A DNA stretch of 64,000 nt from the sequence record NC_048173.1, one strand, 5' to 3'. Under the pieces are notes generated by a model. That model was not told the origin of the DNA and did no database searches. It was given only the letters and a program-made list of their open reading frames with translations. Below, in pieces: positions 5,612 to 23,905 of this stretch. A program made the translations under genes and the position numbers. Position 1 is the first letter of the stretch. Every line of letters starts with the position of its first letter.

Positions 5612-5639
5612 AAAAAATAAAGAGGGGCCAAAGCCCCTC
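5612..5639 (-). terminator. Intrinsic terminator
   Basis: GAGGGGC-TTTG-GCCCCTC followed by TTTATTTTTT on the minus strand. Confidence 0.75.
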
Positions 5640-5653
5640 CAGATTATTTACCC

Positions 5654-6181: not shown

Positions 6182-6228
6182 GTTGCAATTCCCTCTGTTA
6201 ACAGTTGAGGTGACGGGGAGTCGTCATA

Positions 6229-6268
6229 AGAAAAAGACTAAACCGCTATCCCGACGAAAGGATAGCGG
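6229..6268 (-). terminator. Intrinsic terminator
   Basis: CCGCTATCC/GGATAGCGG stem followed by TTTAGTCTTTTTC on the minus strand. Confidence 0.7.
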
Positions 6269-6273
6269 CCAGA

Positions 6274-6798: not shown

Positions 6799-7462
6799 TT
6801 GACTCTCCTGCGGTAGGGATAGGGTAGGTCAGAAATGCGCGTTTCACATTTAAGTAATGCACGTGCGCCTGTTGCGTGGTTCGTACCATGGTCATGTCCT
6901 GTGGTGGAATACCCACCGTTGGGAACTCACGGACGAACTCGTAGTTGGCGTTCATGTTAAACGTGTACGCGTTCGGTTTAAAGTAAATGCATCCTTTGTT
7001 GTTGTCGATAAACGACGTCAAGCCAAAATGCTTCACTGCCAAATAAAAGGACTGACGTGTAACCCAATTTACCCCGAGCGCTTTCATGGCATACAGGAAC
7101 ATGCGGTCAGCAAAGGTCTTGTCGATGAAGACGTTCAGTTTTCCTACGCCGTCGGAATGGTAGTTACCGATAATCGGAATCTTCTGGTAGAGCAGGTCGT
7201 GCAATGCGGCAGCAGGGCCGTAGTCGCCTTCCGGTTTAAACAAAAACTGGAGCTGTGTGGGTATTGATGCTAAATCGGTTACAAACCCTTTCGGGGCAAC
7301 CAAATATAAAGGCGTGTCGGCTTTTAACCCGGTTTCCTTTAAAATGACCTCGAGACGTGTCGGGTCGTCCTCAAACAGACCAGCTAAAGTAAAACCGAAG
7401 GTGTAGTCTTTCGTTAAGATAAACCACTGCTTATCAAAACGACAATACTCAAACTTATCCAT
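6770..7462 (-). CDS. DUF1353-like protein
   Basis: APKGFVTDLASIP, AAALHDLLY and ADRMFLYAM motifs typical of DUF1353. Confidence 0.75.
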   Translation of the reverse strand: MDKFEYCRFDKQWFILTKDYTFGFTLAGLFEDDPTRLEVILKETGLKADTPLYLVAPKGFVTDLASIPTQLQFLFKPEGDYGPAAALHDLLYQKIPIIGNYHSDGVGKLNVFIDKTFADRMFLYAMKALGVNWVTRQSFYLAVKHFGLTSFIDNNKGCIYFKPNAYTFNMNANYEFVREFPTVGIPPQDMTMVRTTQQAHVHYLNVKRAFLTYPIPTAGESNVSAQPQPV

Positions 7463-7493
7463 CTTGTTATCCTTCGTTTTACGTGGGGGTCAT

Positions 7494-7528
7494 AAAAAAA
7501 GAACAAAGGTGTGCCCCGAAGGGCACAC
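7494..7528 (-). terminator. Intrinsic terminator ending the peptide/radical SAM transcript
   Basis: GTGTGCCC-TTCG-GGGCACAC followed by CTTTGTTCTTTTTTT on the minus strand. Confidence 0.85.
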
Positions 7529-7530
7529 GC

Positions 7531-8187
7531 TTACAACTCAGCGATAAACTTCTCTTTCAAACCTTTGAGCGTCGTGTAATCACTTTTCTCAGCGGCAGTA
7601 CGAGCAGTCTGTTTAAAGTCGGTCATCTTTTCATGCAGCGCATTGGTACGCGCAACAATGGCTTCGTTCAACGCTTTCAAATCATCCAGCGTGAATTCGA
7701 ATTTCGCATTGTTGGTATCGACCCAGTAACCCGGATCTTGCTCTGTCGAAAGGTAACGACTAATCGCCGCCAGCGCCTTCTCATCGGTCTGGTAAACCCG
7801 GCCATTCAGTTCGAGTGGAGCGACCACTGCTTCACTGTACGCTTGGTTCACCCACGCAATGAGTTCGGTCAGTAACGCGACACACTTCCCGTGCGTCGAG
7901 ATACGCTCCGCCTGACGTTGAGCCAAATCAATCCCCAGCACATCACTGATAAAGGTGTGTGCAGACTTGAGCGTGAACTTAATCTCCAGTGGAGACAAGC
8001 CCTGCGCTTTCAGTTGGGTTGACAGCTCATCGTCTTTCATCCCATCCAGCAACCGGTAGTGTGCCAGACGAGACAACGACGGGTTCCAACGCGAGTCACT
8101 TAAATGCCCGTCCACAAACTGGCCGTGACGGTCAATCAGTTTCCCGCTGTTGAGGAAGCGATCTTTTATTTGGTCATTACTAAGCAT
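7531..8187 (-). CDS. DUF4376-like tail-fibre assembly-associated protein
   Basis: C-terminal half LNGRVYQTDEKALAAI..WVDTNNAKFEFTLDDLKALNEAI..KQTARTA matches the DUF4376 pattern from recall. Confidence 0.65.
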   Translation of the reverse strand: MLSNDQIKDRFLNSGKLIDRHGQFVDGHLSDSRWNPSLSRLAHYRLLDGMKDDELSTQLKAQGLSPLEIKFTLKSAHTFISDVLGIDLAQRQAERISTHGKCVALLTELIAWVNQAYSEAVVAPLELNGRVYQTDEKALAAISRYLSTEQDPGYWVDTNNAKFEFTLDDLKALNEAIVARTNALHEKMTDFKQTARTAAEKSDYTTLKGLKEKFIAEL

Positions 8188-8729
8188 TCAGTTTTCCCCA
8201 GGATGCCGACGTCTTTCAGCAGACCGTAGTCGAGGAACGAATAGTCCTTCGCCAAGTCATACTGCCAAACGAGGTTAGACACGCGCGATTCCACCGGCGT
8301 TTCTTCAGCAGTGTTGAACACCCCGATATGATCCCACAGCTCAAAGTAGTTGCACTGGTCTTTATTGTCGCGCACCACTTTGATTTTGTTATTCGGGAAC
8401 GACTGCGCCAAAGCAATCAGCGAGTCAACCTGCTTGTTACGCTTTGCACGGAACAGCACAGTCAACTTGCTCGGCGGGGTATCCAGCATACGCTGCTCTA
8501 AGCCGGCGTTACGCAGTTCAGCGTTCGCCAGTGAGTTATGGCCGTTCTCCACACAGTCCAGCTCAATGTGCACGTTCAGCGAGTGACGGATAACCAGCTT
8601 TTTCACTGTGTCGGTGTAGTTCTCTGCTTTACACAGGATGCTTACATCGAACAGCTTATGCTTCGTCAGAAAGGCATCCAGCAGCGTGGTATCAAGCCGA
8701 GTAAAATTGTGAATCATCAATGACTGCAT
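8166..8729 (-). CDS. Hypothetical protein of the radical SAM locus (187 aa)
   Basis: Start moved from the ORF-track 8879 to ATG 8729, which has an AGGA upstream and less overlap with the rSAM gene. No family recognised. Confidence 0.6.
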   Translation of the reverse strand: MQSLMIHNFTRLDTTLLDAFLTKHKLFDVSILCKAENYTDTVKKLVIRHSLNVHIELDCVENGHNSLANAELRNAGLEQRMLDTPPSKLTVLFRAKRNKQVDSLIALAQSFPNNKIKVVRDNKDQCNYFELWDHIGVFNTAEETPVESRVSNLVWQYDLAKDYSFLDYGLLKDVGILGKTECLVMTK

Positions 8730-10038
8730 TAGGCTTTTCCTGTTTTGCATGAACGTGTGGTTGAACAGCCTCTGGTTTCGCGCCAGAGAGTTTCGGAAGT
8801 TTGTTTTCCTGCGAGGCTTTAACACGGCACTCGTAGCAGTTGCACGACAACGGTTTGAACTGGTCACCGTAAGTACCAAAGCGACGTTCCCACCATTGGG
8901 CAGTTAACAGCTTAGCGGTGGTCCAGCCGCACTGACGACGCTCAGAGTGATACTGCTTACGCGCATCTTCTTCGCCATCGCCATTCTCGTACGCCGCGGC
9001 TACGCAGGACGCACAGATGTGTTTGGCCGGGCAACCCAGACAGGCATCAGGATACGACTGCCATTGGGTCTGGACTTCGTTCAGCAGCTTGCCGCCGTCG
9101 GTGTTGACAATCTCGCGACCCACGAGTTTCGCAATTGCCTGACGGGTGGTGACGGTAGACATGAAGCGGTTACAACCGTAGATGTTACGGTCAAAGCCGA
9201 GACAGGTCATGTGAACCGTGGTACCACAGTGCGGTTTCAGACGTTCAGGGTCGTAACGAATCTGATCGTTATGCTGTAACATCTCACGCCATTCCGGAGC
9301 CCACATGTTATCGATGTTCATGCCGCGTGGGGTGATGTGGCCCATCTCAGCAGTCGGGTCTAAGTGCAGACCTTTACCAATCCAGTATTCCAGCACTTCA
9401 ATCATCTGGTTAGAGATGCCGAGCGCCATATCACGTGGAATGATATCTTCGAAAATCATGTTACCGTAAATGGTACCACCGCCAGACTGGTCAATCAGCG
9501 ACTTCATGGACGCCGCGTAGTGCTTCAGCGTGTCATGGGTAAAGGTCGCTTTAATCCCGAGGTCGTTGATTTTCATCGACTTCAGGTAATGATACCCTTC
9601 CAGCGCTTTCTCGTAGGAACCTTTACGAGAGGTGGTGAAGATACGGTGACGGTCGTGGGTTTCCGGCAGACCATCGATTGACACGCCGATAGACAGTTTC
9701 GGATACCAGCGCTCAATGATTGAACGGTTTAACGGCTTATCAAAAAGCGTTCCGTTCGTGGAGATGGAGAACATGTACGGGCGGTTATCACGCGCCGCTA
9801 ACATCTCTGCAGTTTCGAAGGCCGCAATCAGCAGCTTCGGTTGCAGGAACGGTTCCCCACCGATAATGTCGATAATCGCGCCGCCTACATTCGGCTTGCC
9901 GCGGTCACGGTCAAAACAGGCGTGGATGAAGTCAACCACGTCATCTACACGGTTGTTACGCGGGAACTTGCGCTCGTAGCAATAATCGCAATCGAGGTTA
10001 CACGACAAGTTCGTAACAATCTGATACGTTACGTCCAT
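8692..10038 (-). CDS. Radical SAM/SPASM peptide maturase (Cxxx-repeat target type)
   Basis: CNLDCDYC, IIGGEPFL, STNGTL and SIDG..HDRHR core. SPASM Cys set CGTT..NIYGC..CLGCPAKHICASC..C. GAGGGG RBS. Confidence 0.9.
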   Translation of the reverse strand: MDVTYQIVTNLSCNLDCDYCYERKFPRNNRVDDVVDFIHACFDRDRGKPNVGGAIIDIIGGEPFLQPKLLIAAFETAEMLAARDNRPYMFSISTNGTLFDKPLNRSIIERWYPKLSIGVSIDGLPETHDRHRIFTTSRKGSYEKALEGYHYLKSMKINDLGIKATFTHDTLKHYAASMKSLIDQSGGGTIYGNMIFEDIIPRDMALGISNQMIEVLEYWIGKGLHLDPTAEMGHITPRGMNIDNMWAPEWREMLQHNDQIRYDPERLKPHCGTTVHMTCLGFDRNIYGCNRFMSTVTTRQAIAKLVGREIVNTDGGKLLNEVQTQWQSYPDACLGCPAKHICASCVAAAYENGDGEEDARKQYHSERRQCGWTTAKLLTAQWWERRFGTYGDQFKPLSCNCYECRVKASQENKLPKLSGAKPEAVQPHVHAKQEKPNAVIDDSQFYSA

Positions 10039-10051
10039 TACAACATCCCCC

Positions 10052-10927
10052 TCAGGACTGTGGCAAATTTAGGTAGGTGTGTAGATACTTGTAAGCCTCT
10101 ACACCGATGATTTGGGCCATGGCATTACAGCCTGAGTTAACGTAGAAGTCCACGTTCTCATTGTGCTTAATGTCACCGTTTGGTTCTACCAGTTTCAGCT
10201 GACCGCAAGCGTTACAGTTGGTGTGGTCGAAGAACTTCTCCAGACGGAACACCGTGTTGATACCGTTAACGCTGTTGAGATGCTGCATCTGTTCTTCAAT
10301 ACGCTTGTAGCCGTAAATGAAGTTCAGTACGTGGTCCTGATTGAGAGCTTTGTGCATCAGTTTGTCAAACGTCAGGGTCATAGCACCCACACGTAAGTGA
10401 TGCAGAGCAGCATGCAAACGCATGGTGTCTTCAAACCAGCGCGGCTTGCTAACGTGTTCGCGGGTCAGTACACCCCACGTAACCACATTGTCCAGCGCGT
10501 GCATGACTTCAAACGCTTCGTGCGCCCCTTCTTCCACAAACGCCATCAGACTGCGCTCGCCACCTTCGAAATGGTCGATGGAGACGATGATGCGGTCAAA
10601 CGTTTTCAGGAAGTCGAGTTGCGAGAGTTTGAGTTTTCGGCCGTTGGTAAACAGCAGGTGTTTTGCGGAAGGCACTTGCTCACGTGCTTCGCCTACAAAG
10701 TCAACTAACTTCTGGTAGGCCAATAACGGTTCGCCGCCCGTCCACAGGAATTCCTCTACTTGAGGATTTTCTTTTATAATGTCCACCATTGCCTCTTTGT
10801 GTTTTGTTTTCGAAACATCACCCTTGGCCATGTGAGCTGCCCCTCCACAGAAGGAGCAGTTCAGGTTGCACTTAGACGTCAGGGCAATGTCAATCATGGT
10901 AGCAGACGACTTAGGGGTATCGTGCAT
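10052..10927 (-). CDS. Second radical SAM protein (short, Twitch-like C-terminus)
   Basis: CNLNCSFC, WTGGEPLL, FTNG and VSID motifs. C-terminal CNAC..EPNGD..C. Start uncertain (10927 or 10897; the track start 10993 overlaps the upstream gene). Confidence 0.85.
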   Translation of the reverse strand: MHDTPKSSATMIDIALTSKCNLNCSFCGGAAHMAKGDVSKTKHKEAMVDIIKENPQVEEFLWTGGEPLLAYQKLVDFVGEAREQVPSAKHLLFTNGRKLKLSQLDFLKTFDRIIVSIDHFEGGERSLMAFVEEGAHEAFEVMHALDNVVTWGVLTREHVSKPRWFEDTMRLHAALHHLRVGAMTLTFDKLMHKALNQDHVLNFIYGYKRIEEQMQHLNSVNGINTVFRLEKFFDHTNCNACGQLKLVEPNGDIKHNENVDFYVNSGCNAMAQIIGVEAYKYLHTYLNLPQS

Positions 10928-11849
10928 CAGGGTTTTTGTTCCACAGATTTTCCATGAACGCGAATAACGGGTCGGAGACACGAACGTCTTCACCCGGGAC
11001 GATCAGTTTCGGGTCATGGTACGCTTTAAGAATAGCATCCAGCACCTTGTTGCGGTCGTTCAAACGCAGCAGCTCATCCACCGTCACAGTCTGACGGGTA
11101 AAGGAACTGACGGCATTCATCTCTTCGGCCGACAGCAGACCCGCTTCATTGACTTTACCGACCAAGAAGGTCAGTACACGATGTAAGTCAGCGGTAGTGT
11201 TAGGTTGCTCACCGTACTCATACTGCAACAGATAGTTGGTCCACGGCTTACGAATGCGTTTGGTAATCTCATGCGCATCGGTAATTGCGGTCCACTTCAT
11301 ATCACGGTGGTCCCATGTAAATTTATAGGAATACGCGAGCAGGTCGGCCAGACAGTCGATGCCTAACTCTTCGTACCCTTCAACCGGATAGTAACGCTCG
11401 AGGTTGAAATAACCCTCGTCAACGGTACCTTCTTCAACCAGCGTATAATAGAACGGGAACGAAGACGGGTATTCCCAGTTCCACTGACGCTGAATCATCG
11501 GCTTCATGCCGTGTTCTTTGAACGAAGCAAACACCATCTCCAGCGGCATGGAATAGTTCAGCACCGCATCCGTGAAGTAATACTTTTCGTTGACGAGCTT
11601 ACCGACGTATTCGGTTGTGCCATCGAGGTTGTACAGAATCTTAATCCGCAAACCATCCGGCGTGGTAAACTCTTCACGCACTTCTGCGTGATTTAAAATA
11701 TCACGCGGTCGCAGACGAGGGAATTCACCAGGGTTCATGCAAATCAAACGCAGGCGGTCATTCACGTGGTCGTTTACCGCGTCGGGCAGCCCAAGGTGTA
11801 TTGGGTAGTTAAAGTTGGTACGAAACGCCAAGTGTTCATTATTCTTCAC
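10911..11849 (-). CDS. Hypothetical protein of the radical SAM locus (312 aa)
   Basis: GTG start 10 nt after the peptide stop, preceded by TAAGGAG. Aromatic/acidic composition, no family recognised. Confidence 0.8.
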   Translation of the reverse strand: MKNNEHLAFRTNFNYPIHLGLPDAVNDHVNDRLRLICMNPGEFPRLRPRDILNHAEVREEFTTPDGLRIKILYNLDGTTEYVGKLVNEKYYFTDAVLNYSMPLEMVFASFKEHGMKPMIQRQWNWEYPSSFPFYYTLVEEGTVDEGYFNLERYYPVEGYEELGIDCLADLLAYSYKFTWDHRDMKWTAITDAHEITKRIRKPWTNYLLQYEYGEQPNTTADLHRVLTFLVGKVNEAGLLSAEEMNAVSSFTRQTVTVDELLRLNDRNKVLDAILKAYHDPKLIVPGEDVRVSDPLFAFMENLWNKNPDARYP

Positions 11850-11859
11850 GGATAGCTCC

Positions 11860-12069
11860 TTACGATGGCCACGTTACCGCTTTAGCGCCACCTGATGCTG
11901 ACCAGCTGCAGCTGCCGTTACAACGGTAGGCCCCAGCCGGAATATTGTTTAAACGGTTCGCGTTATTCACCGTCCCCCGCGTGGCGATATAGTTATTCGC
12001 AGACGCGGTCGTGATGTACCCTTCGAGACGGGCGATTTGTTGCGCAACCTCGTTCAGTGAAACAGCCAT
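11860..12069 (-). CDS. Short MAVSLN-leader peptide (2 Cys; truncated-core paralog)
   Basis: TAAGGAG RBS. 49-aa leader homologous to the two long peptides, then CNGSCSWSASGGAKAVTWPS. Confidence 0.85.
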   Translation of the reverse strand: MAVSLNEVAQQIARLEGYITTASANNYIATRGTVNNANRLNNIPAGAYRCNGSCSWSASGGAKAVTWPS

Positions 12070-12078
12070 AGCGACTCC

Positions 12079-12477
12079 TTACGGTCCTGAGCAACCAGAG
12101 CATCCCGTACAAGACGACGAACAGCTACCAGAGCAGCCGCCTGAACAGCCTCCCGAACAACTTGTAGAGCACGTACCGGAACAGGTTCCCGTACAGTTAC
12201 CCGAACAACCCCCAGCACAACCACCCGTACAGTTAGACGAGCACGAACCGCCACACGTCCCTGAACAAGTGCCTGTACAACCGCCAGAACATGCAGACCC
12301 GCATGACCAGCTACAAGTGCCGCCACAATGGTAATGGTTGGCGTCTTGACCGGCTAATCGGTCGACGTTGTTTGAAGTTTTACCGCCGATGTACGCTTGA
12401 ACCCCTGCTTCTGTTTTCAGTGCAGCGGATTCAATGTTGCTCATCTGGTTCTTTACTGCATTAAGTGATACAGCCAT
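12079..12477 (-). CDS. Cxxx-repeat Cys/Gly/Ser-rich peptide (putative radical SAM substrate) 2
   Basis: TAAGGAG RBS. 50-aa leader plus 82-aa core with 21 Cys (18 consecutive Cxxx units, then CTG-CSG-CSGP). Confidence 0.9.
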   Translation of the reverse strand: MAVSLNAVKNQMSNIESAALKTEAGVQAYIGGKTSNNVDRLAGQDANHYHCGGTCSWSCGSACSGGCTGTCSGTCGGSCSSNCTGGCAGGCSGNCTGTCSGTCSTSCSGGCSGGCSGSCSSSCTGCSGCSGP

Positions 12478-12488
12478 GGTCGCTCTCC

Positions 12489-12875
12489 TTACATCGGACC
12501 GGAACAGGCAGAACAGCCCGTACAGGAACTAGAACAAGAGCCAGAGCACCCGTGACCACATCCGCCAGAGCACGATGAGGAACAAGCACTACCACAACCA
12601 CCCACGCAGGTGCCGGTACAGGTCCCAGAGCAACTGCCTGAACACGTACCAGAACAACCACCGGAACAGTTACCGGAACAACTCGAGCAACCATAGGAGC
12701 ACCCAGACGAACATGTCCAGCTACAGCTACCGTTACAGCGAATGTCCCCGGGTGACATGCCACCCAGATTGTTTGCGTTAAATGCTTTGGTTGCAACCTG
12801 ATTGTCCACAGAAGGTCCTGTGGCCAAAGACAGTCTCGCAATTCGCGCATTAACGTCATTAAGTGAAACGGCCAT
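12489..12875 (-). CDS. Cxxx-repeat Cys/Gly/Ser-rich peptide (putative radical SAM substrate) 1
   Basis: AAAGGAAG RBS. 46-aa leader plus 82-aa core with 21 Cys, ending CSGSCSSSCTGCSACSGPM. Confidence 0.9.
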   Translation of the reverse strand: MAVSLNDVNARIARLSLATGPSVDNQVATKAFNANNLGGMSPGDIRCNGSCSWTCSSGCSYGCSSCSGNCSGGCSGTCSGSCSGTCTGTCVGGCGSACSSSCSGGCGHGCSGSCSSSCTGCSACSGPM

Positions 12876-12929: not shown

Positions 12930-14129
12930 TTATCTGGTACCTGCAGCCGACTGGAGGTCGTCGCGGGTAGTGAGGCTGTTGTTAACGTGAACAGCCGCTT
13001 GCACCACGCCACCGGTGTTTTTGTTGAGGTACTGGTCGTGTGGGTTAGCTGCAGACTGGTGCGCCGCCAAGGCCGCATTCGTGTTAGCCAATGCCTGTTC
13101 CAGAGCCGCGATGCGATTTTCGAGCCCTTGGTTCGAGTTAGCCATGTTCGCAATCTGCTGTTTCAGGTTACTGATTTCCTGATTAGCGGCCGCCAGTCCC
13201 TGATTAAGGGTACCGAGCTGTTGCGAGAGCAGACCGACCTGCGTTTCCAGCACCAGAATCTCATCCATCAGCTCAGCGATTTGCAGCTGGGTCTTCTGGT
13301 AGTTCTGGTCAACGGTGTTAAGCTGGGTGTTCCACGTGCCAATTGAGCTAACCAGTGCGGCAATCTGCTGCGTTAAGTTAGTGTCGGTTGCGCCCAGTGT
13401 GCCGATATCTTGCAGGACAGCGTTAATGCTACTCTGTACTGTTTGAATCTGTGCCCGGACTTCAGCGGTGGAGTACACATCCAACTGACCACGGGTCAGG
13501 TTGTGAACGTTACCTTCGGCCGTACGGTGCTCTTCTAATGCCGACAGCATCTCTTGACGATACGCTTTAAGCATGTTTTGAATCTGCACCATTTCAGCGG
13601 AAGCGCCGATACGGATAGCATCGTTCAGCTTAGACAGCAGCGTAACAATATATTCAAAACCGAAGAAGTCACCCATGTCGCGGAAGGCAGGTGCGCCCGC
13701 AAACTCATCCGGCACGTCACGCAGTTCAGCGAAGTTAATCGTCGGGTCATCTAAGTTCAGCGTATTGATACACTGAATGATGTTGTCCACGTTCGCGGCA
13801 TACGGGCCACCGACAATCTGAGCCGATGCCGTAATGTCTGCCGGGACTGACGATTTGGTAATGACAATGGCTGTGGCAATCTCACGTCCGCCGGCCTGTT
13901 TGGTCAGGGACGGGTGGAGCAGAATCACTTCGTAGTTGGTACCCCGAACGAGTGGCTGATTAGGCGCATTCACCGGAGCCATTCGAAGCGTATCAACAAA
14001 GAACGGACCTGTCGGGAAAGCAAACGCTCGGTTAACAGTACCGGTACCGAGTTTAATCGGATGCGATACAGCATTACTGAGGTTGGTTCCGAACAGGTCC
14101 AATGGGTATTGCATTGCTACCTTACTCAT
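12930..14129 (-). CDS. Coiled-coil tail-fibre-like virion protein
   Basis: N-terminal YPLDLFGTNLSN domain is shared with the three giant fibre genes. Long heptad region. HRTAEGNVH and HQSAANPHDQYL fibre motifs. Confidence 0.7.
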   Translation of the reverse strand: MSKVAMQYPLDLFGTNLSNAVSHPIKLGTGTVNRAFAFPTGPFFVDTLRMAPVNAPNQPLVRGTNYEVILLHPSLTKQAGGREIATAIVITKSSVPADITASAQIVGGPYAANVDNIIQCINTLNLDDPTINFAELRDVPDEFAGAPAFRDMGDFFGFEYIVTLLSKLNDAIRIGASAEMVQIQNMLKAYRQEMLSALEEHRTAEGNVHNLTRGQLDVYSTAEVRAQIQTVQSSINAVLQDIGTLGATDTNLTQQIAALVSSIGTWNTQLNTVDQNYQKTQLQIAELMDEILVLETQVGLLSQQLGTLNQGLAAANQEISNLKQQIANMANSNQGLENRIAALEQALANTNAALAAHQSAANPHDQYLNKNTGGVVQAAVHVNNSLTTRDDLQSAAGTR

Positions 14130-14156
14130 CGGAAAAACTCCTTGTGGTGAGTAAAG

Positions 14157-14180
14157 AGTGGGGAGCCGAAACTCCCCACT
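14157..14180. terminator. Strong hairpin (weak or bidirectional terminator, or RNA stability element)
   Basis: AGTGGGGAG-CCGAAA-CTCCCCACT. Followed by CTTTAC on the minus strand and TTATTT on the plus strand. Confidence 0.55.
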
Positions 14181-14184
14181 TTAT

Positions 14185-17100
14185 TTACACGCTCAGGGTG
14201 GAATCATGAATCATAACATCAAGGACAGTTGCCGTTGTTGCATCAAAATAGATGTCAACGTACTTGCCGCCCGCGAATGCACGTTCTTCCGTCCAGAACA
14301 TAACCGGAGCTTTCGCCCCGCCCGATTGACGCATTGCCAGAATATAATCTTTCCCCGTAGGGACGGCGATGGTCTGGCCGCCCACTGCATTAGTACCAGT
14401 TAGCGTGGTTGGACTTGCAGGATTAGGTATCTTCACGCCCGTCATTGCAGCATTGGATACCGCGAGTTTTGTCGTACCGTCTTGCACCAGCTCGAACGCA
14501 ATATAGCACGGCGAGTTACCCGGGGCTTCATTAACAACGAAGGCCAGCGCGTTAGGCTGATTTAACAGCGCACCAGTCAGATTCAACGTAGCGTTACCCG
14601 ACAACGTTCCTTTAGAAACGCCGTTAAGGTATACATCCGCTGAATCATCTACTTGCACATTCAACACCAACGATGTTGATGTTGGTGTAAACGTGGTTTT
14701 CGTTGCCCAAGCGGTTCCGGCTGCCAGTTTACTCTCTGGGATGAGGGTAATTGCTGGTGAAGCCAGTGGTGGGCTATAGGCGCTAGCACGTGTCCCAACA
14801 TTCGGCCAAAGTTTCTCGGCATAGTTGGTCAGTAACATCCACGGCGCGGGGGACGCAGGGAAAGACAGGCGCTGGACTGTGTCGAAGTTACCGCCTAACT
14901 GGTTTGCTGTTTCCAGCGCTGCAGCAGTACCGTAAGACTTCGTTAAATCCGCACCCGGACGAGTGATGTTCCAGAATCGTGTAGCATTCTGAGACGTGGC
15001 CCCGTACCCAAAGCGACAACTGCGTGCAAAGGTCGGTGCTGCTGTCACCAAGTCCACTTCCGCGTATTTATACGTGGCTGTGTTTCTCAGCTGACTTAAC
15101 GTTAACCCTTTCTTCGCCGCAATGATGGCTCGGATATTGTCATCGCGTACACCGGTGGTCGGCAGTAGTGCATGTTCTACCGCGATATACAGCATGTTAC
15201 CGCGACGTTCAGCATACACGTGCGCATACCACTTACTCCATGCCAGCAAGTCCGTGGTATCCGCATCCAACGTGGCGATTAACTTAGATGACGCCTGACG
15301 GTAGTTCTCTTTGAGCTGAATCAGACCAGACAGGTTAACGTGCGACTCAATTGAGTTGCCGATAGCCAGACATAACGTCTTCTCGACGTTTGCCGTGGTG
15401 TCTTCCTTCTTCAGCGCAGCAAGCACTACTGCAACCCCGTCGTTGTCACCGTCGTTGGACGTGATAACCGTGTTGAACACATAGTCACCCACCAATTCAT
15501 CCGAGATAAAGCCCACGAACGTTGCGGTGTTTAACGTACATTCAACGACGTCGTCGGCTGCCACGTATTTCCATGCTGCCAGTTCGGAGTCATTCGCCGG
15601 CTGGTCTGCAGTGGAGTTGTTGTGGCTGAAACGGTACCAGCTGTTATAGATGTCTGCGAACGATGGGAAGGCAAACGAGTCTACCGTCCCCAAGTTTTCC
15701 ATGTTCGAGTACAACGTATCTGGCGCAGCCGCACTTGGCAGGTAGTTGTGTGCATAGCGGTTGTCAGCATGACTCAACAGTGCACCTACACGGCCCAGAC
15801 GTTTCACACGGCTGATTTTCGCTTCGGTAATCGCGTTGCTGGATGTTGTTGCATAACCGATATACAACCGGGAGTCAGTATCAGCAAGTTTCGTTTTCGA
15901 GACCAGATACTCCGCCGCTCCAGACGCGTTTAACTGCACATGGAAATAGAGCGTAGCATTCTGGTAGTCCGTAGGGAATAGCGTTTTGAAATCGAACGTC
16001 GCCGCAGGGACAAGGTGGTCTTCCATCTTCGCAAAGAACGGAACCGCTTGCGTGATGTACAGAATCATCCCTTCTGCGACTTGCGGGCCAAAGAGAATTG
16101 TGGGGCGACCACCGGTTTCAAACGCAATACCTTTCCCGCTGTAAACCGTCCCCCCTAGATAAACTCCGAGCATTACAAAACCAATTTTTGCGATCTCATC
16201 CGTTTCCTGAAGATACACATAATCGATTTCATTATTAGACGGGTTAAACGAAATACGCGTGCCTGTCCATGTTGTCAAATCTTGAGAGATTTTCAACAGG
16301 TAACTCAAGTCGGTACTAGAGCTACTGGTATTCACACGACATAGCGTTCTTGTCCTTAATAACCAGCCGTCGGCACGCTTAATCAAACGCATCTGACTCA
16401 TCTCTGCCAAATCATTGAGCGTGACCGCAGACACCCTGAATTTCTCTTCCTTCCACACCTCGACACCACTGATCATCGACAGAGAAATAATTCCATTGTC
16501 AAACGTCATCGGGATACGGTAGAAATAAGTGCTGTTATCAAACCCACCGGCCGTAGCGTTCGGAGTCAGAATACAAGTTTGCAGCACGCAGAGGTTTTGT
16601 CCTCCGAAGTCAAAGATACTCAGCCAAGCGATACGCAGCGTAGGATCAATAGCCAACCAGCCCGGAATTTTCGCGTCTAAGAAGTTTTCAATAGCTGACC
16701 ACTGCTCAGCACTGATAGCAACCCTCTCGTTGGTGATGACGGTGGTGCCTGCAATATTTCGATACGCACGACTTTCTGCCTTTCTAAACGAAGCACCGTT
16801 GAGATAGGATTGGCTACCGTTATAGACTTGTCCCAGGCGACAAATCGCTTCGTAGTCATTTTGCGACACGGTCTCACGATCATTAGACGGCCCCCAACCC
16901 GTATAATCCGGCACACCGTAGGTAGTGTCCGTGTCGTACGCGATGCTCATACACGACCCGGTGCTACGTTGACGAAGAAGCATTTTCTTGGCAGTGCCGC
17001 CCAAAGCCGCCATCCCGCGCATTCTAAGAATGTACGGCGAAGCGTATGGACCAAGCACATTCACACTGTTTCCAATTAAGTTGGTCCAATCGGCATTCCA

Positions 17101-19869
17101 GTGCGCGCTTTCAAACGCGTCAGTATTTGGTAAGCGGAAACGCACCAAAAAGTCTTCTGCATCTGAGTTGCCGATACCGGTGACCCTATCCCCCTGAACG
17201 AACAGGCACATAGTGTACCCGTAGAAAAGATTGTTCGAGGTTTGACCGTATTTCCCTTTCGGGAAGGTCAACCCGGTTTCATCAACACACAACGGGAAGA
17301 AATCGTCGTCGAGCGTGGCCGTTTTCGCGGAGAGATCGATAACATAAGACACCGTCCACTGAGGATCGCTATTTCGAATACCCTGCGCCTGCAACGAAGA
17401 ACGGGCATGCAAACGAACACGAATTTTATTGCCTTTTGCTGCAGCATAAATGTTTCTGCGGCTAAAGCTGATCATATTACGCGAAGTCCATTTCGCGGCC
17501 CCTTCTGGTGTGATGTACCAAAAGTTTGTCGTGTTAGGGTCAGTGGAGTTGGTACCATACGTTGAAAAACGCGCAGCATCACCCGCGGGGTACTTCCCAG
17601 TTAGCGGCACTTTGGACATCAGCAGGTCGGAAGTTTTCCCGACTAGACTTTCATCCAACGTCCAAATACAGGTATAAAAGTCTTGGGGGACCAAGTACAT
17701 TTTAAGCAGGCACACTTTCCCCTCGGTTAACACCAACCGGTCTTCATTGGTGTTAAAGTACGAAGGGGTAATTGGGTCGACTGTTCCGCCATTAAGCGCT
17801 TCCAAGGTCACGCGCGAGACACGGGTGTGTTTCGCCATGTTCATGGTACCGTCAAACATAACCAAATAGTATTTGTCATCGGTCCCTTGGAAAATACCGC
17901 ATTCATCACCAATGACAGTGACCGTTTTGAACTTCACGTTCGGGGCGATAGCTTTTAGCCCCACGGGCACATACTCTACGGTGGTTGGAATCGGATTGGA
18001 AACTGCGCCTGTTTCACTCACATCCGCTGTCCAATACAACACCATCTCGGAGCCGGCATACCCGCTCGTGGCATTACGAAGCACATAGAACTTACCGTTC
18101 TCTTCCCGACCGATGTTTGCCCGAAGTGCGGCTTCCATTTGTTGAGACGAGCCGTCGTAACGACCGGCGGTTGGGATAGGCAGGAAGCCACTGTCTCCGT
18201 AATACGTACCGCTGGCCACCCACGACGGTAACAGGTTGTTGGCTTTGTCTTCCGCCCCATCGATATCCAGCTTTAACTGATAACCGAGTTTAGAGACTGC
18301 CGCCCGTTGAGTCGTGTAGTCGATACCTGCCGCCAAATACGCCAACCCCGACAGAATAGGTGAGGCGGTTGGGACATTCTGCAAGTCTGCGGCGACGTGG
18401 GTGTGGACTTTCAGCGCCTTCGTGGTTAACTGGTCACGGAACACTTGTGTCACTGGCTTGTCAGCCGGTGCTGTGTTGTTGACCTTATCCAGACCAAACG
18501 ACAGTGCCGTCAGGTTAATGGTTTGGGTCGAACCGAAGGCTGCGTTGTTGATTTTGAAAGTCTCATCAACGTAGTTATTCAGTTTCAACAGCAGGTCGTT
18601 CACTCCCTTCTGTGACAGCGCGTAGTTCGGCGCAATAACCTCTACACTGTCTGTCAAACGGAACAGCCCTTCTACGGTATTCGTCGCAGCCGGGGTCTGA
18701 GCCGTCATGTTCAGTGGGGACTGCGTCGAGCCATTACCGCCCATCAACACCGTCGACGTGGACTTGAAGCTCGGTTGAGCATTCGAGTTCAGTGGGGCGT
18801 AAAGGTACAGGTTAATGGACTCTGGGGTAATCAAGAAAGCGCCGTTATAAATCGGACGGACATCTTTCGCCCCAGCAGCATTACCTTTGGAAGGTACGAA
18901 CAGCTCATCATAACCTGCACGGGAGGACACGCCTACCCCACGCTGGTTGTTGTCACTGTCTGCCGCCAGTTCAATGACCGCTTCTGTACCGGTCAACAGG
19001 ATTTTGCCCGCGGTGAACCGCAGGGCAGACTTCCCGTCTTGCGTGGCGTACATCAGCTCATCGTTATTGATAGCACGGAACCGTCCAAAGACTTGGCCCA
19101 TGGTATCTTCGAGCAGCCCATCCACGATACGCTGTGAGATTTTGTGCTCGACCATAATCGCCACTAACTCAGCGAGCGTCTTACTGAACGCTTTCACTGC
19201 GTTGGTTGCGGCATCCCCTGCCGCTAACGCCCCGATTTGTGCCGGGGTGTATTTGTGCTGATGAGGTGTTCTATGGTGCTGTAACAGTTTATCCGCATAC
19301 AGCTTTTGGGCTGCACGAGACAAAGCGGTTAAGGCGGCATTAATCTCAGTGTCGAGTTGACCAGCCTTCGCTTCAATCTTCAGACGGATACCATCAATCG
19401 ACTTCGCCACCTCATCACGCTGTAGCGCTTCGGCAAGCGTTGCGGGTGGGTCAATTGGGTCAATGGTAATTGGGTAGCGCATCAACGATTTCCAGTCGAT
19501 GTTGCGCGGTTCGGTCAGTTCAGGATTAACTAAGAAGATGCCAATGTCCGATTCAGGAACCGAATAAGACGAACCGAGAACCTGAGCTTTGTAGGTAATC
19601 TCGGTTTTGGTCAGTAGCATTATCCCGCCGAAAAGCTGAGCGTTTGCAGCGTGGGCACCCTCTGAGTAATACAACGCGAGGTAGTAATCAATACCTTCAA
19701 ATAACAGATTCCCCGCTGTGTCCTTAACCTCTAAGCCGTTACGAAAGAAGGGCGCCTCGGGAGGCACCACTAAATTGAAACGGTTAGGATAAGTGGACGA
19801 CTTGAGGGAACCTTCCGCGATGTTATCAGGGCTTTCGCCCGTCAAATCTTCGGGATAATGTTTTCTCAT
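14185..19869 (-). CDS. Giant tail-fibre/baseplate-fibre protein (1894 aa)
   Basis: YPEDLTG N-domain. HHRTPHQH, LDKVNNTAPADKPV and HTHVAADL fibre motifs. Beta-rich C-terminal domains. Confidence 0.75.
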   Translation of the reverse strand: MRKHYPEDLTGESPDNIAEGSLKSSTYPNRFNLVVPPEAPFFRNGLEVKDTAGNLLFEGIDYYLALYYSEGAHAANAQLFGGIMLLTKTEITYKAQVLGSSYSVPESDIGIFLVNPELTEPRNIDWKSLMRYPITIDPIDPPATLAEALQRDEVAKSIDGIRLKIEAKAGQLDTEINAALTALSRAAQKLYADKLLQHHRTPHQHKYTPAQIGALAAGDAATNAVKAFSKTLAELVAIMVEHKISQRIVDGLLEDTMGQVFGRFRAINNDELMYATQDGKSALRFTAGKILLTGTEAVIELAADSDNNQRGVGVSSRAGYDELFVPSKGNAAGAKDVRPIYNGAFLITPESINLYLYAPLNSNAQPSFKSTSTVLMGGNGSTQSPLNMTAQTPAATNTVEGLFRLTDSVEVIAPNYALSQKGVNDLLLKLNNYVDETFKINNAAFGSTQTINLTALSFGLDKVNNTAPADKPVTQVFRDQLTTKALKVHTHVAADLQNVPTASPILSGLAYLAAGIDYTTQRAAVSKLGYQLKLDIDGAEDKANNLLPSWVASGTYYGDSGFLPIPTAGRYDGSSQQMEAALRANIGREENGKFYVLRNATSGYAGSEMVLYWTADVSETGAVSNPIPTTVEYVPVGLKAIAPNVKFKTVTVIGDECGIFQGTDDKYYLVMFDGTMNMAKHTRVSRVTLEALNGGTVDPITPSYFNTNEDRLVLTEGKVCLLKMYLVPQDFYTCIWTLDESLVGKTSDLLMSKVPLTGKYPAGDAARFSTYGTNSTDPNTTNFWYITPEGAAKWTSRNMISFSRRNIYAAAKGNKIRVRLHARSSLQAQGIRNSDPQWTVSYVIDLSAKTATLDDDFFPLCVDETGLTFPKGKYGQTSNNLFYGYTMCLFVQGDRVTGIGNSDAEDFLVRFRLPNTDAFESAHWNADWTNLIGNSVNVLGPYASPYILRMRGMAALGGTAKKMLLRQRSTGSCMSIAYDTDTTYGVPDYTGWGPSNDRETVSQNDYEAICRLGQVYNGSQSYLNGASFRKAESRAYRNIAGTTVITNERVAISAEQWSAIENFLDAKIPGWLAIDPTLRIAWLSIFDFGGQNLCVLQTCILTPNATAGGFDNSTYFYRIPMTFDNGIISLSMISGVEVWKEEKFRVSAVTLNDLAEMSQMRLIKRADGWLLRTRTLCRVNTSSSSTDLSYLLKISQDLTTWTGTRISFNPSNNEIDYVYLQETDEIAKIGFVMLGVYLGGTVYSGKGIAFETGGRPTILFGPQVAEGMILYITQAVPFFAKMEDHLVPAATFDFKTLFPTDYQNATLYFHVQLNASGAAEYLVSKTKLADTDSRLYIGYATTSSNAITEAKISRVKRLGRVGALLSHADNRYAHNYLPSAAAPDTLYSNMENLGTVDSFAFPSFADIYNSWYRFSHNNSTADQPANDSELAAWKYVAADDVVECTLNTATFVGFISDELVGDYVFNTVITSNDGDNDGVAVVLAALKKEDTTANVEKTLCLAIGNSIESHVNLSGLIQLKENYRQASSKLIATLDADTTDLLAWSKWYAHVYAERRGNMLYIAVEHALLPTTGVRDDNIRAIIAAKKGLTLSQLRNTATYKYAEVDLVTAAPTFARSCRFGYGATSQNATRFWNITRPGADLTKSYGTAAALETANQLGGNFDTVQRLSFPASPAPWMLLTNYAEKLWPNVGTRASAYSPPLASPAITLIPESKLAAGTAWATKTTFTPTSTSLVLNVQVDDSADVYLNGVSKGTLSGNATLNLTGALLNQPNALAFVVNEAPGNSPCYIAFELVQDGTTKLAVSNAAMTGVKIPNPASPTTLTGTNAVGGQTIAVPTGKDYILAMRQSGGAKAPVMFWTEERAFAGGKYVDIYFDATTATVLDVMIHDSTLSV

Positions 19870-19872
19870 TAC

Positions 19873-22800
19873 TTATTCCTTTTCAAGATTTAGCTGCGTA
19901 ACCACGAAGTCCCAGTTACGCTGGGTCAGGTTCCATGGGTTCTGCATTGCAATCATTGGGATTTTACCGAACTCGTAAGCATACCAATTCGCCACGTTTG
20001 TTTCGAGCGTCTTGGTCGTGTTGTCGTTGTACGTGATGGTAAACTTCGCTTTCACGAAACACGTTAAAGCGCCTGCCGTTGGTTCAGTGGTTACGGTGAA
20101 GTAACCTTTAAAGTTAGCACTCGGCACATAATTGATAGTTGCTGTAGCGTTACCCACCGCACCCGCTTGGTTGGACTTAGCAACCTGTAGACCATCTACC
20201 CACGCGCTTAGTACACCCTGTCCCGCGAGATTCACGGACACAGTTTTGGCGTTGGTCAATAGTCCCGGCTCGATATGCGTTGCGGCATAACCCCGACGAT
20301 TAAGGTTTGCCAATCCGATAGCAGTCCCCGCATCAGTTCCCGGGTTCAGGAAATCATCCGTCAGTACCGGTGTTACCCCAAACGTTGACTCACGCGAACC
20401 CGTCGTCCACAGCCCGTGAGGAACCGCGTACGAGGCAGTGTCGCGTAAAATGTTCGTCGTCTCTTCGGTGAGTATCACCTGTGTGGCAATATCCACGTCC
20501 GCCATCTCTGTACCTAAGAAGAACCCAACACGACCACGTTGGAGTCCGTTCTTTTTCGCCGCATACGCCGACAGCTCAGAGCCACGGATATACGACTTAA
20601 TAAGGCCAGTGTGGTAGTTCAGACGCGTCAGGTATTCCGTTGGGATACTGCAATCAAAGATAGAACCCATGATGCGGTAGCCCAGTTTGCTTGAAGAGGC
20701 GTAACCGACGTACGGCCCTTCAAAGAAACGCGAAATGTCCTGTTCGAACACCAAGGTGCAGAAACGGTGAACCTCAACGCGAGTGTCGTCGTCCACTACC
20801 CCGATAAGGATATTAAGACGCTTTTCTGCCGGGATATAACGGTAGCGTGTAGCCAGTACCCGCGGTTTCTTAATACTCGTACCGTCGACGTGGGTCGGGA
20901 AGTTAAAGCTTGCTGCTACTTCAACATCTTCAGCGCGTACAAATGGGACGAGGTTAGTCCGTGGGATTTCAACATACGGCAACGCAACCGGCTGCGGGGT
21001 CACTTCATTAACGAACGCAATCGATGCCTGTGCTTTCGCCGCGATATCAATCGCAAACAAAGACAGTACCTCGTGCTTACCGTTAACGGGGGCGGCAACA
21101 AACTCGAGAATCCCCGACTCGTTCGACATGAAGGAACCGTCGTAGGTGACTTGTCGTTTTGCCTGCGGGTTGGCCATGTTCTTCCAACGATAAGGAGACT
21201 GACCCTTCACCCCAACCCACACCCGTAGCCCACCTGCCGCGGCAGCGCCTTCTGCTACCACGAGAGTACCTTGCGTACGCAACGCCATTCCCGCCGTGTT
21301 AGAGAACATTGCCACGCTCGGGGTCGAGGTCACTGACTTATCGGCCACACCGTACGGCTCAGTAATCTCCAAACCGGGCACTTTCACATCAGCAGGACTG
21401 TAGTCGCTCGCTGTCGTGTCAATACCGCCGTGGGCGCGCTGGTCAGCAATATGCTCTTGCAGCTCACGGAACTGACCGAAGTCAATCACTTGGTTAAACT
21501 GAATCGGGCCACCTGAGGTAATCACTGCGGTAGCGTTCGTGTCAACGTAACCCAGATACAACATCTCAGTGTTCAGCGAGTCACTCGGTACCGGTGCACC
21601 CACCGCTTGGAATTTACCCAAGGTAACGTTTCCGTAAATAAAGAAACGCATGTTGGCAGTAGGCAGGTTGTTGGCGATGGTGCCGACCTTGGTAGCCGCC
21701 GAACTGTTGTACACAGGTGTAGCGCCGTCCATGACATCGAAGGCAATCGACGCTGGCTTAGTGGTGTCTTCGCACAACGACAGAATAGCAATCGCATGCA
21801 CACCCGGCAGTAACTCGATTTCCACATTCGGATCGGTCGCTGCTTCAATAACCGGGTTTTCATCCACCCAGATAGACACTTTACCCGCAGACCGTACGCG
21901 GATTTTGATAATGTCATCCGTAAAGCGCAAACGCACCTTCGCTGCCAGTCGCACGTTAGCCCCGCCCAAACGGTTATTCGCCGTAGAAACAGCAACCGCT
22001 TGTGGCAATGGGTTAGCCGGCTGGGTGTTATGCACCACACCCGCATTCCAGTTGTTCTCGATACCGCACGCGGTGTAATACCACGTCCCGCTCGGCACCG
22101 CCGCAAGGTTAACCACCCCGTCAAACGTCCCTTCCGCTGAGTCAAGGGCACGAGCCACGAAATAACGGTACGCCGTGGTCGGCGTCAGGTTCCAGCCCGA
22201 TACGTTAAAGGTGACCGACTCCACCGTCGTGAACTCTAAGGTGTCTTTGTACATCACACCGAAGAAACGTTTGTTGATATCCGCCAAACGGTCGTTCAAC
22301 GCTTTAAGTACCGCGGGGGCAACCGCCTGACCGTCTTCCACTTCAGAAAGCTGGGAGGCAATCTTCACGGTACCGTACGCCATGCGGGTGGCTTGCCCAA
22401 TCTGCAGCATTGACCAGTCGTGCTTGTGGTCTTTGGCTACTAAGGCATCCGTACGCGCCTTCTGCGGCGTTGAGAGCGGTTTATTCAAGTCAGCAGTGTT
22501 ATCTACCGAACCCAAGTTTAAATCGCCCTTATCGAGGGTAATGCCGGCACCGGACATCGGCTTGTTGTTAATCAACAGCGTCTTCGGCACCATGTCATTA
22601 AAACCGTCGTTGTACGGCTTACCGGAGGCGGGCGTGGCCGCTACGCCATCAGCCACTGCACCCGGGCCTGTTACGAGTTTTACCTTTCCCGGGAGCGCTT
22701 TGGTGGCTTTCGGGATGTTCAGGTCAGCTTCAAGCGGTGCAGACGGTGTACCTTTCCCTTTGAACGTCATGTTCGTTGAGGAGATATTAATCTGCACGTT

Positions 22801-23895
22801 CTCAGGGTCGCCGTTAACGTCCTTCGACTGATACTTCTTCACCGTACGGCCAGTCAGTAAAGCCACACCGTTTAAGGTGAGCTTATCAACGCCCAATGCT
22901 GTACCGTTGGTGGTAACCCGCAGGGTGTTCGTCCCACAGACATACTCAACGTATTTCGCGCCTGACAAGTCCGTCCCTGCCGCTGCCACAATACCACCTT
23001 GTGTAATCAGCTGAATCTTCGCAGCCGACAGAATCAGTTTGGTGGTGTTGGTGCTATCAGCAATAACGGTGGCTCCGTCCGCAAACTGGAAGGTGCCTTT
23101 AACGTTCTTCGACAGATAGCGGTGGAGGTACAGTTGGATATCCGCATCGGACAAACCCTGTGAGCGAATGTTTTCAATCAGCTCGCGCAGGTTTTTCCCG
23201 TAGGCCAGAAACGTATCCGGAACTTCCAACCCGACCGGGTGCGCGTTAAGCTGGGTCGGGGTGACACTGTGCGGGTCAGTTGCCGCAATGTGCGCCGGGT
23301 AGTTAAACGCTTCGATATCCGTGAACAGTTGGTTCGCCTGTCGCGTTAATGCTTGCAAGTCCGTTTTCAGGTCTTGCACATCGGCATCAACAGCAGCCGC
23401 CACATCATCCACAGCAGATGCGGTGTACTGTTTGTTTTTGGCATCGGCCCAACTGGTATAGCTGGGCTTTTGTGGGAACAGCGCAGGCACCCCATTCAGC
23501 GAACGGTAGCTGGCCGAACGGGGGTTGTTAATGTACTTAATCAGGTAGTCCAGAATCTCTGTCAGCGGGTCGTAGAAATCACCCCCCAACAGATTTCCGT
23601 TGAACACGAGATTACCACTGATTTCAGGATTAATGAACTGGACACCGCAGTAGACCGGTGGTGCATCTGTAGCCAATGAAGCCTTCAGTGCCGACAGCTC
23701 ATAAACGTATTCGTAGTCGGAGCCTTCGTCCAACGGGGTGGTGCTATTCCCGTTGAAGATTTGTAACGCCCCGAAGAACGGGGCATGGCTTAACATGATA
23801 ACACGGTCGGTGTTCTCATTGGACTCGAGAATACGCTCCTCAGTGAAGACGTTAGTAGTCGCCTTCCCTGTCGGGTCGTACGGATATCTAGTCAT
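19873..23895 (-). CDS. Giant tail-fibre-like protein (1340 aa)
   Basis: YPYDPTG N-domain. HIAATDPH, LGSVDNTADLNKPLS and HKHDWS motifs. Paralog of its neighbours. Confidence 0.75.
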   Translation of the reverse strand: MTRYPYDPTGKATTNVFTEERILESNENTDRVIMLSHAPFFGALQIFNGNSTTPLDEGSDYEYVYELSALKASLATDAPPVYCGVQFINPEISGNLVFNGNLLGGDFYDPLTEILDYLIKYINNPRSASYRSLNGVPALFPQKPSYTSWADAKNKQYTASAVDDVAAAVDADVQDLKTDLQALTRQANQLFTDIEAFNYPAHIAATDPHSVTPTQLNAHPVGLEVPDTFLAYGKNLRELIENIRSQGLSDADIQLYLHRYLSKNVKGTFQFADGATVIADSTNTTKLILSAAKIQLITQGGIVAAAGTDLSGAKYVEYVCGTNTLRVTTNGTALGVDKLTLNGVALLTGRTVKKYQSKDVNGDPENVQINISSTNMTFKGKGTPSAPLEADLNIPKATKALPGKVKLVTGPGAVADGVAATPASGKPYNDGFNDMVPKTLLINNKPMSGAGITLDKGDLNLGSVDNTADLNKPLSTPQKARTDALVAKDHKHDWSMLQIGQATRMAYGTVKIASQLSEVEDGQAVAPAVLKALNDRLADINKRFFGVMYKDTLEFTTVESVTFNVSGWNLTPTTAYRYFVARALDSAEGTFDGVVNLAAVPSGTWYYTACGIENNWNAGVVHNTQPANPLPQAVAVSTANNRLGGANVRLAAKVRLRFTDDIIKIRVRSAGKVSIWVDENPVIEAATDPNVEIELLPGVHAIAILSLCEDTTKPASIAFDVMDGATPVYNSSAATKVGTIANNLPTANMRFFIYGNVTLGKFQAVGAPVPSDSLNTEMLYLGYVDTNATAVITSGGPIQFNQVIDFGQFRELQEHIADQRAHGGIDTTASDYSPADVKVPGLEITEPYGVADKSVTSTPSVAMFSNTAGMALRTQGTLVVAEGAAAAGGLRVWVGVKGQSPYRWKNMANPQAKRQVTYDGSFMSNESGILEFVAAPVNGKHEVLSLFAIDIAAKAQASIAFVNEVTPQPVALPYVEIPRTNLVPFVRAEDVEVAASFNFPTHVDGTSIKKPRVLATRYRYIPAEKRLNILIGVVDDDTRVEVHRFCTLVFEQDISRFFEGPYVGYASSSKLGYRIMGSIFDCSIPTEYLTRLNYHTGLIKSYIRGSELSAYAAKKNGLQRGRVGFFLGTEMADVDIATQVILTEETTNILRDTASYAVPHGLWTTGSRESTFGVTPVLTDDFLNPGTDAGTAIGLANLNRRGYAATHIEPGLLTNAKTVSVNLAGQGVLSAWVDGLQVAKSNQAGAVGNATATINYVPSANFKGYFTVTTEPTAGALTCFVKAKFTITYNDNTTKTLETNVANWYAYEFGKIPMIAMQNPWNLTQRNWDFVVTQLNLEKE

Positions 23896-23905
23896 TACGA
23901 ATCCT

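Follow-up and report, generated by a model that had tools for sequence, protein, structure and literature searches.

An eight-gene cassette in Erwinia phage Derbicus (NC_048173) appears, on balance, to make a post-translationally modified cysteine (Cys)-repeat fiber module, and two radical S-adenosylmethionine (SAM) enzymes probably crosslink a part of a fiber. Derbicus, of the genus Derbicusvirus, is a jumbo myovirus of the fire-blight bacterium; hosts are Enterobacterales. The cassette was analyzed within a 64,000-nucleotide stretch of the genome (hereafter the window), in which a position equals the NC_048173 record position minus 124000. It encodes three small paralogs (pepA, pepB and pepC), two of which carry long runs with a Cys at nearly every fourth residue (Cxxx runs), followed by gp159, a short radical SAM enzyme (rSAM; gp158), an rSAM/SPASM enzyme (gp157), gp156 and gp155. 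We know of no phage virion protein that is matured by an rSAM, and full-text literature searches returned no report of Cxxx-repeat systems in phages or of an rSAM-matured phage virion protein. An earlier reading of this DNA (the sequence-only reading) had also known of no characterized phage example.

The regularity of the two long peptides is their most conspicuous property. Successive Cys residues are four positions apart in 17 of the 20 intervals of pepA and 18 of the 20 intervals of pepB, and three apart in the remainder. The 82-residue cores of both proteins are composed almost entirely of Cys, Ser, Gly and Thr, with no Lys, Arg, Asp or Glu. The pepA core contains 17 i/i+4 Cys pairs, compared with a maximum of 12 over 100,000 shuffles, and among the 446 open reading frames (ORFs) of the window a Cxxx-type run occurs in pepA and pepB only. 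The N-terminal part of about 45 residues, which begins with MAVSLN and was found in no window ORF besides the three peptides, is homologous to the stretch found just before the Cxxx run of tail fibers in other phages. These ORFs and their spacing bear out the sequence-only reading, which had described three MAVSLN-leader peptides, two of them with 21-Cys Cxxx cores. In family searches, pepA matched phrog_6085 (E=4.5e-43), and the Derbicus peptides matched no other PHROG family. Against the TIGR04114 repeat model (cut-off 20 bits), pepA scored exactly at the cut-off (20.0 bits) and pepB at 23.8 bits, and pepC gave no match. A TIGR04114 target is recognized by its score together with a neighboring SPASM rSAM, and both are present here, as the rSAM gene is located 2 kb downstream in the same operon.

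Public annotation has largely missed these genes. RefSeq lays the wrong-frame ORFs gp161 (12054-12326) and gp162 (12461-12859) over pepB and pepA, opposite-strand ORFs are annotated at the peptide locus of Phobos (gp167/168) and CR5 (CR5_157), and SPN3US_0166 is a wrong-frame ORF at the same place. In all public records opened, the long peptide genes were missing or mis-framed; in Derbicus, pepC alone is correctly annotated. We compared Derbicus with Phobos and found that substitutions at codon positions 1/2/3 numbered 20/11/65 in pepA, 11/11/74 in pepB and 8/7/37 in pepC, and that 21 of 21 Cys residues were kept in each of pepA and pepB, whereas the remaining five frames showed 31-82 amino acid changes plus stop codons. 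This third-position bias, together with the conserved Cys residues, identifies the Cys frame as the coding frame, and the Cys-frame ORFs are real genes. Strong ribosome-binding sites of the TAAGGAG type precede pepA (AAGGAAG), pepB, pepC and gp159, and weaker sites precede the enzymes. Two to three well-expressed genes are therefore lacking or mis-framed in the reference annotation of a model giant phage, which bears on the interpretation of its proteome and of cryo-electron microscopy, and the true peptide genes are absent from reference proteomes across the whole phage group.

Both enzymes belong to the radical SAM superfamily, with PF04055 scores of 45.9 bits (gp157) and 43.1 bits (gp158) at a cut-off of 29.5, and their cluster motifs are CNLDCDYC and CNLNCSFC, respectively. 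In an alignment of 15 diverse relatives of gp157, the motif residues C13, C17 and C20 are invariant, as are C271, C289, C333, C336, C342, C345 and C370, which form the SPASM pattern; on this pattern gp157 is assigned a SPASM domain, and two auxiliary [4Fe-4S] clusters are predicted. The top family matches of gp157 were PapB (NF047865; 113.2 bits, cut-off 340) and TIGR04115, or rSAM_Cxxx_rpt (111.5 bits, cut-off 350). Since both scores are far below the cut-offs, gp157 is a member of neither family and was classed apart from them; positive controls for TIGR04115 on viral contigs scored 636, 586 and 386 bits. The sequence-only reading had proposed Cxxx-repeat substrates with an rSAM/SPASM maturase, and this pairing stands: the TIGR04114 threshold is reached by the long peptides, and TIGR04115 and PapB are the best matches of gp157, although below cut-off. 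When a profile of gp157 relatives was compared with solved structures, the best match was 5WGG/5WHY (E=1.6e-45); 5WHY is CteB (PMC13692751). The alignment with 5WGG begins at chain residue 97, so gp157 lacks the N-terminal peptide-recognition domain (RRE), and the protein indeed begins at its cluster motif.

The best family match of gp158 was HxsC (49.1 bits, cut-off 268), and it showed weak similarity to HxsC, viperin, MoaA and BtrN. We call it accessory because the copy number of short rSAMs varies from zero to two in other lineages. For the same reason, a dual radical SAM system, as the sequence-only reading put it, describes Derbicus with its two enzymes but is not universal, other loci having zero, one or two short rSAMs. 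On metagenomic jumbo-phage contigs of about 225 kb (L027, positions 4546-5457, and also L017), a gene for a 303-aa short rSAM is located between pepA and pepB, so the position of the short rSAM is not fixed.

Evidence for a role in tail fibers comes from contigs of other, unrelated phages. In the clade nearest the jumbo phages (loci L007 and L028-L036), the Cxxx run forms the C-terminus of proteins of 247-568 aa. These proteins and the Derbicus peptides have the same junction before the run, an N-A-x-x-L-x-G segment followed by C-x-G-x-C-S-W. The L031 protein matches Pfam Phage_tail_fib (E=1.8e-40), those of L030 (2e-40) and L032 (3e-32) match tail-fiber PHROGs, and L029 and L035 give weaker fiber matches; the C-termini of all five match the Derbicus peptide family, phrog_6085. 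The gene 5' of the Cxxx-ended fiber encodes central tail fiber J in two loci (L030 and L033); in L007 it encodes a GpJ-like tail protein. Gene order in these fusion loci is Cxxx-ended fiber, gp159 homolog and SPASM rSAM; the SPASM enzyme is preceded or followed by zero to two short rSAMs, and in 29 loci a gp159 homolog adjoins a Cxxx-ended fiber gene. In addition, true TIGR04115 enzymes on gut viral contigs (636 and 586 bits) occur just downstream of baseplate wedge genes. Given the fiber fusions and the baseplate-adjacent enzymes, the Cxxx/rSAM system looks like a cassette at a tail-fiber position, and the jumbo-phage version looks, by sequence comparison, like the same Cxxx module made free-standing as small proteins. 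The Cxxx-ended tail fibers elsewhere lend support to the earlier proposal of a fiber-associated component rather than a secreted bacteriocin. In the siphovirus-like contig L007, three consecutive rSAM genes (5306-8134) follow the Cxxx-ended fiber gene and the gp159 homolog, and further downstream are another fiber gene and a Cys-containing TSP1-like protein.

The SPASM enzyme was found in 83 phage records. Sorted by the word that opens the organism name, these are Erwinia (34), Salmonella (22), Campylobacter (15), 'Bacteriophage' (6), Cronobacter (2), Escherichia (2), Enterobacteria (1) and Proteus (1); SPN3US, phiEaH2, Machina, Kwan and Asesino are among them, and the rSAM matches in Campylobacter phages are below 60% identity. 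The peptide triad together with gp159, gp158, gp157, gp156 and gp155 was present in 18 of 18 SPN3US-like jumbo-phage loci. In these loci pepA has 127-132 aa and 21 Cys, pepB 130-155 aa and 20-23 Cys, and pepC 68-81 aa and 2-4 Cys. The rSAMs are thus not found apart from the peptides in this clade; the sequence-only reading had held that rSAM genes occurring independently of the peptides in related phages would speak against it, and no such arrangement was seen, as all 18 loci carry both.

Viral contigs often carry more distant relatives of gp157 (25-37% identity), of which 376 were confirmed; bacterial hits numbered 375. A Cxxx-run ORF was nearby in 77 of the 83 examined loci with a relative of gp157, and these ORFs were on the rSAM strand in 112 cases versus 3 on the opposite strand. 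At bacterial control loci of more distant rSAMs, a Cxxx-run ORF was found in 11 of 80, mostly at those of the closest relatives; this control set came from a profile scan of genome contigs and consists mostly of distant rSAMs of other families. A tblastn search with the Cxxx peptide of L008 gave no match, probably through low-complexity masking. In Candidatus Termititenax / Margulisiibacteriota genomes (L091-L093), distant SPASM-enzyme relatives adjoin proteins some 660 aa long that have 112-122 Cys arranged in Cxxx-type runs, and these proteins are extreme members of the Cxxx theme in bacterial metagenome-assembled genomes.

The conserved partner gp159 belongs to a small family, with 35 cluster representatives in 1.84e9 proteins. 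Its AlphaFold model is confident (pLDDT 84; predicted template modeling score 0.80). There was no sequence match in PDB, and a fold search of PDB and BFVD matched only its own ortholog. We propose that gp159 is a substrate-binding or chaperone component. For gp156, five close relatives only were found, and the AF2 model (pLDDT 54) is unusable. The suggestion that gp155 is DUF4376-like was borne out by a Pfam match; this domain is typical of tail-fiber and fiber-assembly neighborhoods, and DUF4376 genes also flank the cassette in L008 and L009.

The genes upstream of the cassette encode virion proteins. gp163-gp166 have a common N-terminal domain (phrog_2163) and differ in their C-terminal parts, forming a paralog family of baseplate or fiber proteins. 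Their SPN3US orthologs, SPN3US gp167-170, are virion constituents, one of which, gp168, is described as a tail protein. The earlier description of four tail-fiber-like genes is therefore a reasonable label for these virion proteins but is not proven for all four. The SPN3US virion proteome includes the fiber-block proteins gp167-173 and lacks gp161-165 of the cassette, which is what one expects of maturases (PMC5694885, Supplementary Table 1). The SPN3US counterparts of the two long peptides have, in one case, no annotated ORF and, in the other, a wrong-frame ORF, and the short paralog is unannotated too. Since these ORFs were absent or mis-framed, the published SPN3US proteomics could not have detected the long peptides, whose cores also have no tryptic sites; Lys and Arg do occur in the N-terminal parts. 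By position the Derbicus peptides are in the fiber block, and their PHROG match is to phrog_6085 alone.

These observations can be brought together in one scheme. pepA, pepB and pepC would be miniature fiber-type proteins, in which the N-terminal part is followed, in pepA and pepB, by a C-[S/T]-G-x ladder. gp157, aided by gp159 as a substrate-binding partner, would modify this ladder late in infection, in the cytoplasm, and gp158 would add a second, lineage-optional modification. By analogy with the nearest relatives, PapB, CteB and CrpC, the likeliest chemistry would be the formation of many S-C thioether crosslinks of the ranthionine or sactionine type. The product may be a rod or tip that is rigid, withstands reductants and proteases, and joins the tail-fiber/baseplate apparatus encoded just upstream. 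That the number of Cys hardly varies between genera suggests a structural rod whose length is fixed, and three paralogs with homologous N-terminal parts invite a heterotrimer model, so that the product could be an A/B/C trimer. The role given to gp159, the trimer and the residence of the peptides in the virion are what we infer from these features.

Several points weigh against this scheme. The modification of the peptides and their presence in the virion are predictions. Asp, Glu and Gln, the acceptors in the characterized PapB and CrpC reactions, are missing from the pepA and pepB cores; either Ser, Thr or Gly would need to serve as acceptor, or the reaction may be a different one. gp157 scores about one-third of the TIGR04115 and PapB cut-offs. 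The jumbo-phage module is not fused to a fiber. gp159 was also considered as an RRE domain, and this was not supported, as the PDB search gave no recognizable RRE fold.

Comparison with known systems places the cassette near, but outside, several of them. The CXXX-repeat pair TIGR04114 and TIGR04115 (Pfam PF27846) is an in-silico family for which no characterized product was found. It resembles the phage system in having a substrate with Cys at every fourth residue beside a SPASM rSAM, and its true members also occur in phage baseplate/fiber neighborhoods; the phage clade differs in that it also has the gp159 family and, in most cases, one or two short rSAMs, and its substrates are fiber proteins or mini-fibers with the C-x-G-x-C-S-W junction. 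PapB and CteB, the ranthipeptide SPASM maturases of freyrasin and thermocellin, form Cys thioether crosslinks. PapB is the best family match of gp157, CteB its best solved relative, and the three-cluster architecture is the same, whereas gp157 has no N-terminal RRE and its substrate has a core with about 21 Cys, no Asp, Glu or Gln, and a fiber context. In the His-Xaa-Ser system (HxsA-D), a repeat substrate is likewise combined with two rSAMs, a SPASM enzyme and a short one, and HxsC is the best match of gp158. However, gp157 reaches 54.0 bits against an HxsB cut-off of 370, gp158 is also far below the HxsC cut-off, the repeat is Cys-based and no HxsD relative was found, so the cassette is not a member.

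The closest experimental parallel is archaeal. CrpC, a SPASM rSAM of Methanococcus voltae, installs ranthionine crosslinks on the repetitive, Cys-rich CrpA, and CrpB is a CrpA paralog in which the first 47 N-terminal residues are almost identical (PMC13692751). As in pepA, pepB and pepC, the two candidate substrates are paralogs with a common N-terminal region of about 47 residues. CrpC belongs to another rSAM subfamily (gp157 scores 50 bits against the TIGR04463 cut-off of 525), and the Crp system has a 17-residue repeat with C-x-x-Q/D motifs and a predicted RRE in CrpC (PMC13692751); its context is archaeal and cellular, and a link to viruses is not mentioned in that paper. Overall, the Derbicus cassette can be placed with the in-silico CXXX-repeat system as a relative that scores below threshold, with the addition of an orphan partner and a second rSAM and in a fiber context that we found described nowhere.

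Among other uses of the Cys ladder, it is improbable, though not negligibly so, that it binds metal ions or iron-sulfur clusters without being crosslinked, as a metallothionein-like store or an axial stack in the fiber, while the rSAMs do something else or use the ladder as a cluster donor. Twenty-one regularly spaced Cys residues with small side chains between them would suit such a role, and many archaeal Cys-rich proteins adjoining rSAMs are predicted metal ligands (PMC13692751). This leaves unexplained the strict linkage of the Cxxx run to a SPASM enzyme whose nearest relatives form thioethers, and crosslinking and metal binding could coexist.

Slightly less probable is a role confined to assembly, in which the Cxxx domain would be a transient nucleus for folding or trimerization of fibers that is removed or left behind, and that acts in trans, without becoming part of the particle, in jumbo phages. 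Intramolecular chaperone domains of fibers are usually C-terminal, where the Cxxx run of the fusion proteins is found, and the neighboring DUF4376 and DUF1353 genes bear assembly-type labels; on the other hand, the proteins searched showed neither a protease domain nor a cleavage motif, and it seems costly to have up to three rSAMs modify a domain that is then discarded.

We also consider it unlikely, marginally more so, that the peptides are precursors of a free peptide made on ribosomes and modified post-translationally (RiPP), a bacteriocin-like, signaling or anti-defense product freed at lysis, for which the fiber neighborhood is merely a late-expression slot. The leader/core layout, the RiPP-type maturase and the free-standing state of the jumbo-phage peptides agree with this, and lysis removes the need for an exporter. 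No exporter, leader protease or immunity gene is annotated in the window, as the sequence-only reading had noted, although many neighbors are 'hypothetical' and the absence is not absolute; with no RRE in gp157 either, the locus does not correspond to a canonical exported RiPP cluster. Moreover, at least nine other lineages have the module joined covalently to larger proteins as their C-terminus, several of these proteins being in tail-fiber families, and the number of Cys and the core length are near-fixed across genera, unlike those of fast-evolving antimicrobial cores. Finally, the idea that the Cys-rich ORFs arose by chance in repetitive, GC-rich sequence, and that the other frames or strand annotated by RefSeq and GenBank are real, is refuted by the substitution pattern, the retention of all Cys and the stop codons and extensive changes that the other frames show, and is further opposed by the strong ribosome-binding sites, cross-genus conservation and a PHROG family for the Cys frame.

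Returning to the crosslinked fiber module, we advance a broader proposal more tentatively. rSAM/SPASM chemistry could be a widespread and unrecognized form of tail-fiber maturation, in which TIGR04114/TIGR04115 and their sub-threshold relatives may produce a thioether-stapled distal fiber domain in phages ranging from gut prophages to jumbo phages. This domain would, in SPN3US-like phages, be split into three small virion chains, perhaps a heterotrimeric mini-fiber, missed by every annotation and proteome. If the ladder is indeed crosslinked and on the fiber, it would amount to a structural post-translational modification of a new kind for viruses, it would give a biological role to an orphan rSAM/Cxxx family so far defined in silico, and it would explain the 'radical SAM' genes of SPN3US, phiEaH2, CR5 and related jumbo phages, which have long been noted without a function.

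The layout of the locus is given in the table below. All eight minus-strand genes that the sequence-only reading had listed were recovered as closely packed ORFs at 7531-12875, with intergenic distances of -38 to +13 nt, and 54 nt separate pepA from the upstream virion gene. The strong terminator it had reported is also present, immediately 3' of the final stop codon, as an 8-bp GC-rich stem (7528-7509) with a TTCG loop followed by a T-run. In a scan for sigma-70 promoters, sites were no commoner than in shuffled sequence, and the operon promoter was not found. The window region is 100% identical to Derbicus, near-identical in EarlPhillipIV and 97% identical in pEa_SNUABM_38, 81% in Phobos and 77% in Cronobacter phage CR5.

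Table. Genes and signals of the Derbicus cassette and its upstream block (window positions)
Feature	Position	Strand	Description
pepA	12489..12875	-	128 aa, 21 Cys; 46-aa N-terminal part and 82-aa core; absent from public annotation
pepB	12079..12477	-	132-aa paralog, 21 Cys; RefSeq gp161 is a wrong-frame ORF here
pepC (gp160)	11860..12069	-	69-aa paralog, 2 Cys; same N-terminal part and junction (…RCNGSCSW…)
gp159	10911..11849	-	312-aa orphan protein, conserved partner of the system
gp158	10052..10927	-	291-aa short rSAM; CX3CX2C and few C-terminal Cys
gp157	8692..10038	-	448-aa rSAM/SPASM enzyme; no N-terminal RRE domain
gp156	8166..8729	-	187-aa orphan protein; jumbo-phage clade only; phrog_7988
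gp155	7531..8187	-	DUF4376 protein (Pfam E=8.2e-12)
Intrinsic terminator	7494..7528	-	closes the operon
gp163-gp166	12930..27535	-	four virion proteins; co-directional block upstream; common N-terminal domain

Some neighboring genes also deserve mention. Just past the terminator is gp154 (6770-7462), a DUF1353 protein with the PHROG label 'tail assembly chaperone', and a homolog (E=5e-30) is found immediately 3' of the short rSAM in the unrelated locus L031; gp154 may be linked to the cassette. Its SPN3US ortholog (SPN3US gp157) occurs at low level in virions and is listed as 'head'. Two small paralogous genes, gp151 and gp152 (5081-6181), adjoin the cassette, and the SPN3US gene at the matching position (matched by place only) is gp160, a very abundant head protein with more than 300 copies per capsid. 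gp153 (6274-6798; 174 aa), annotated as peptidase M15A in Phobos, resembles a cell-wall hydrolase and not a leader peptidase, and is located between the fiber block and the head-protein genes.

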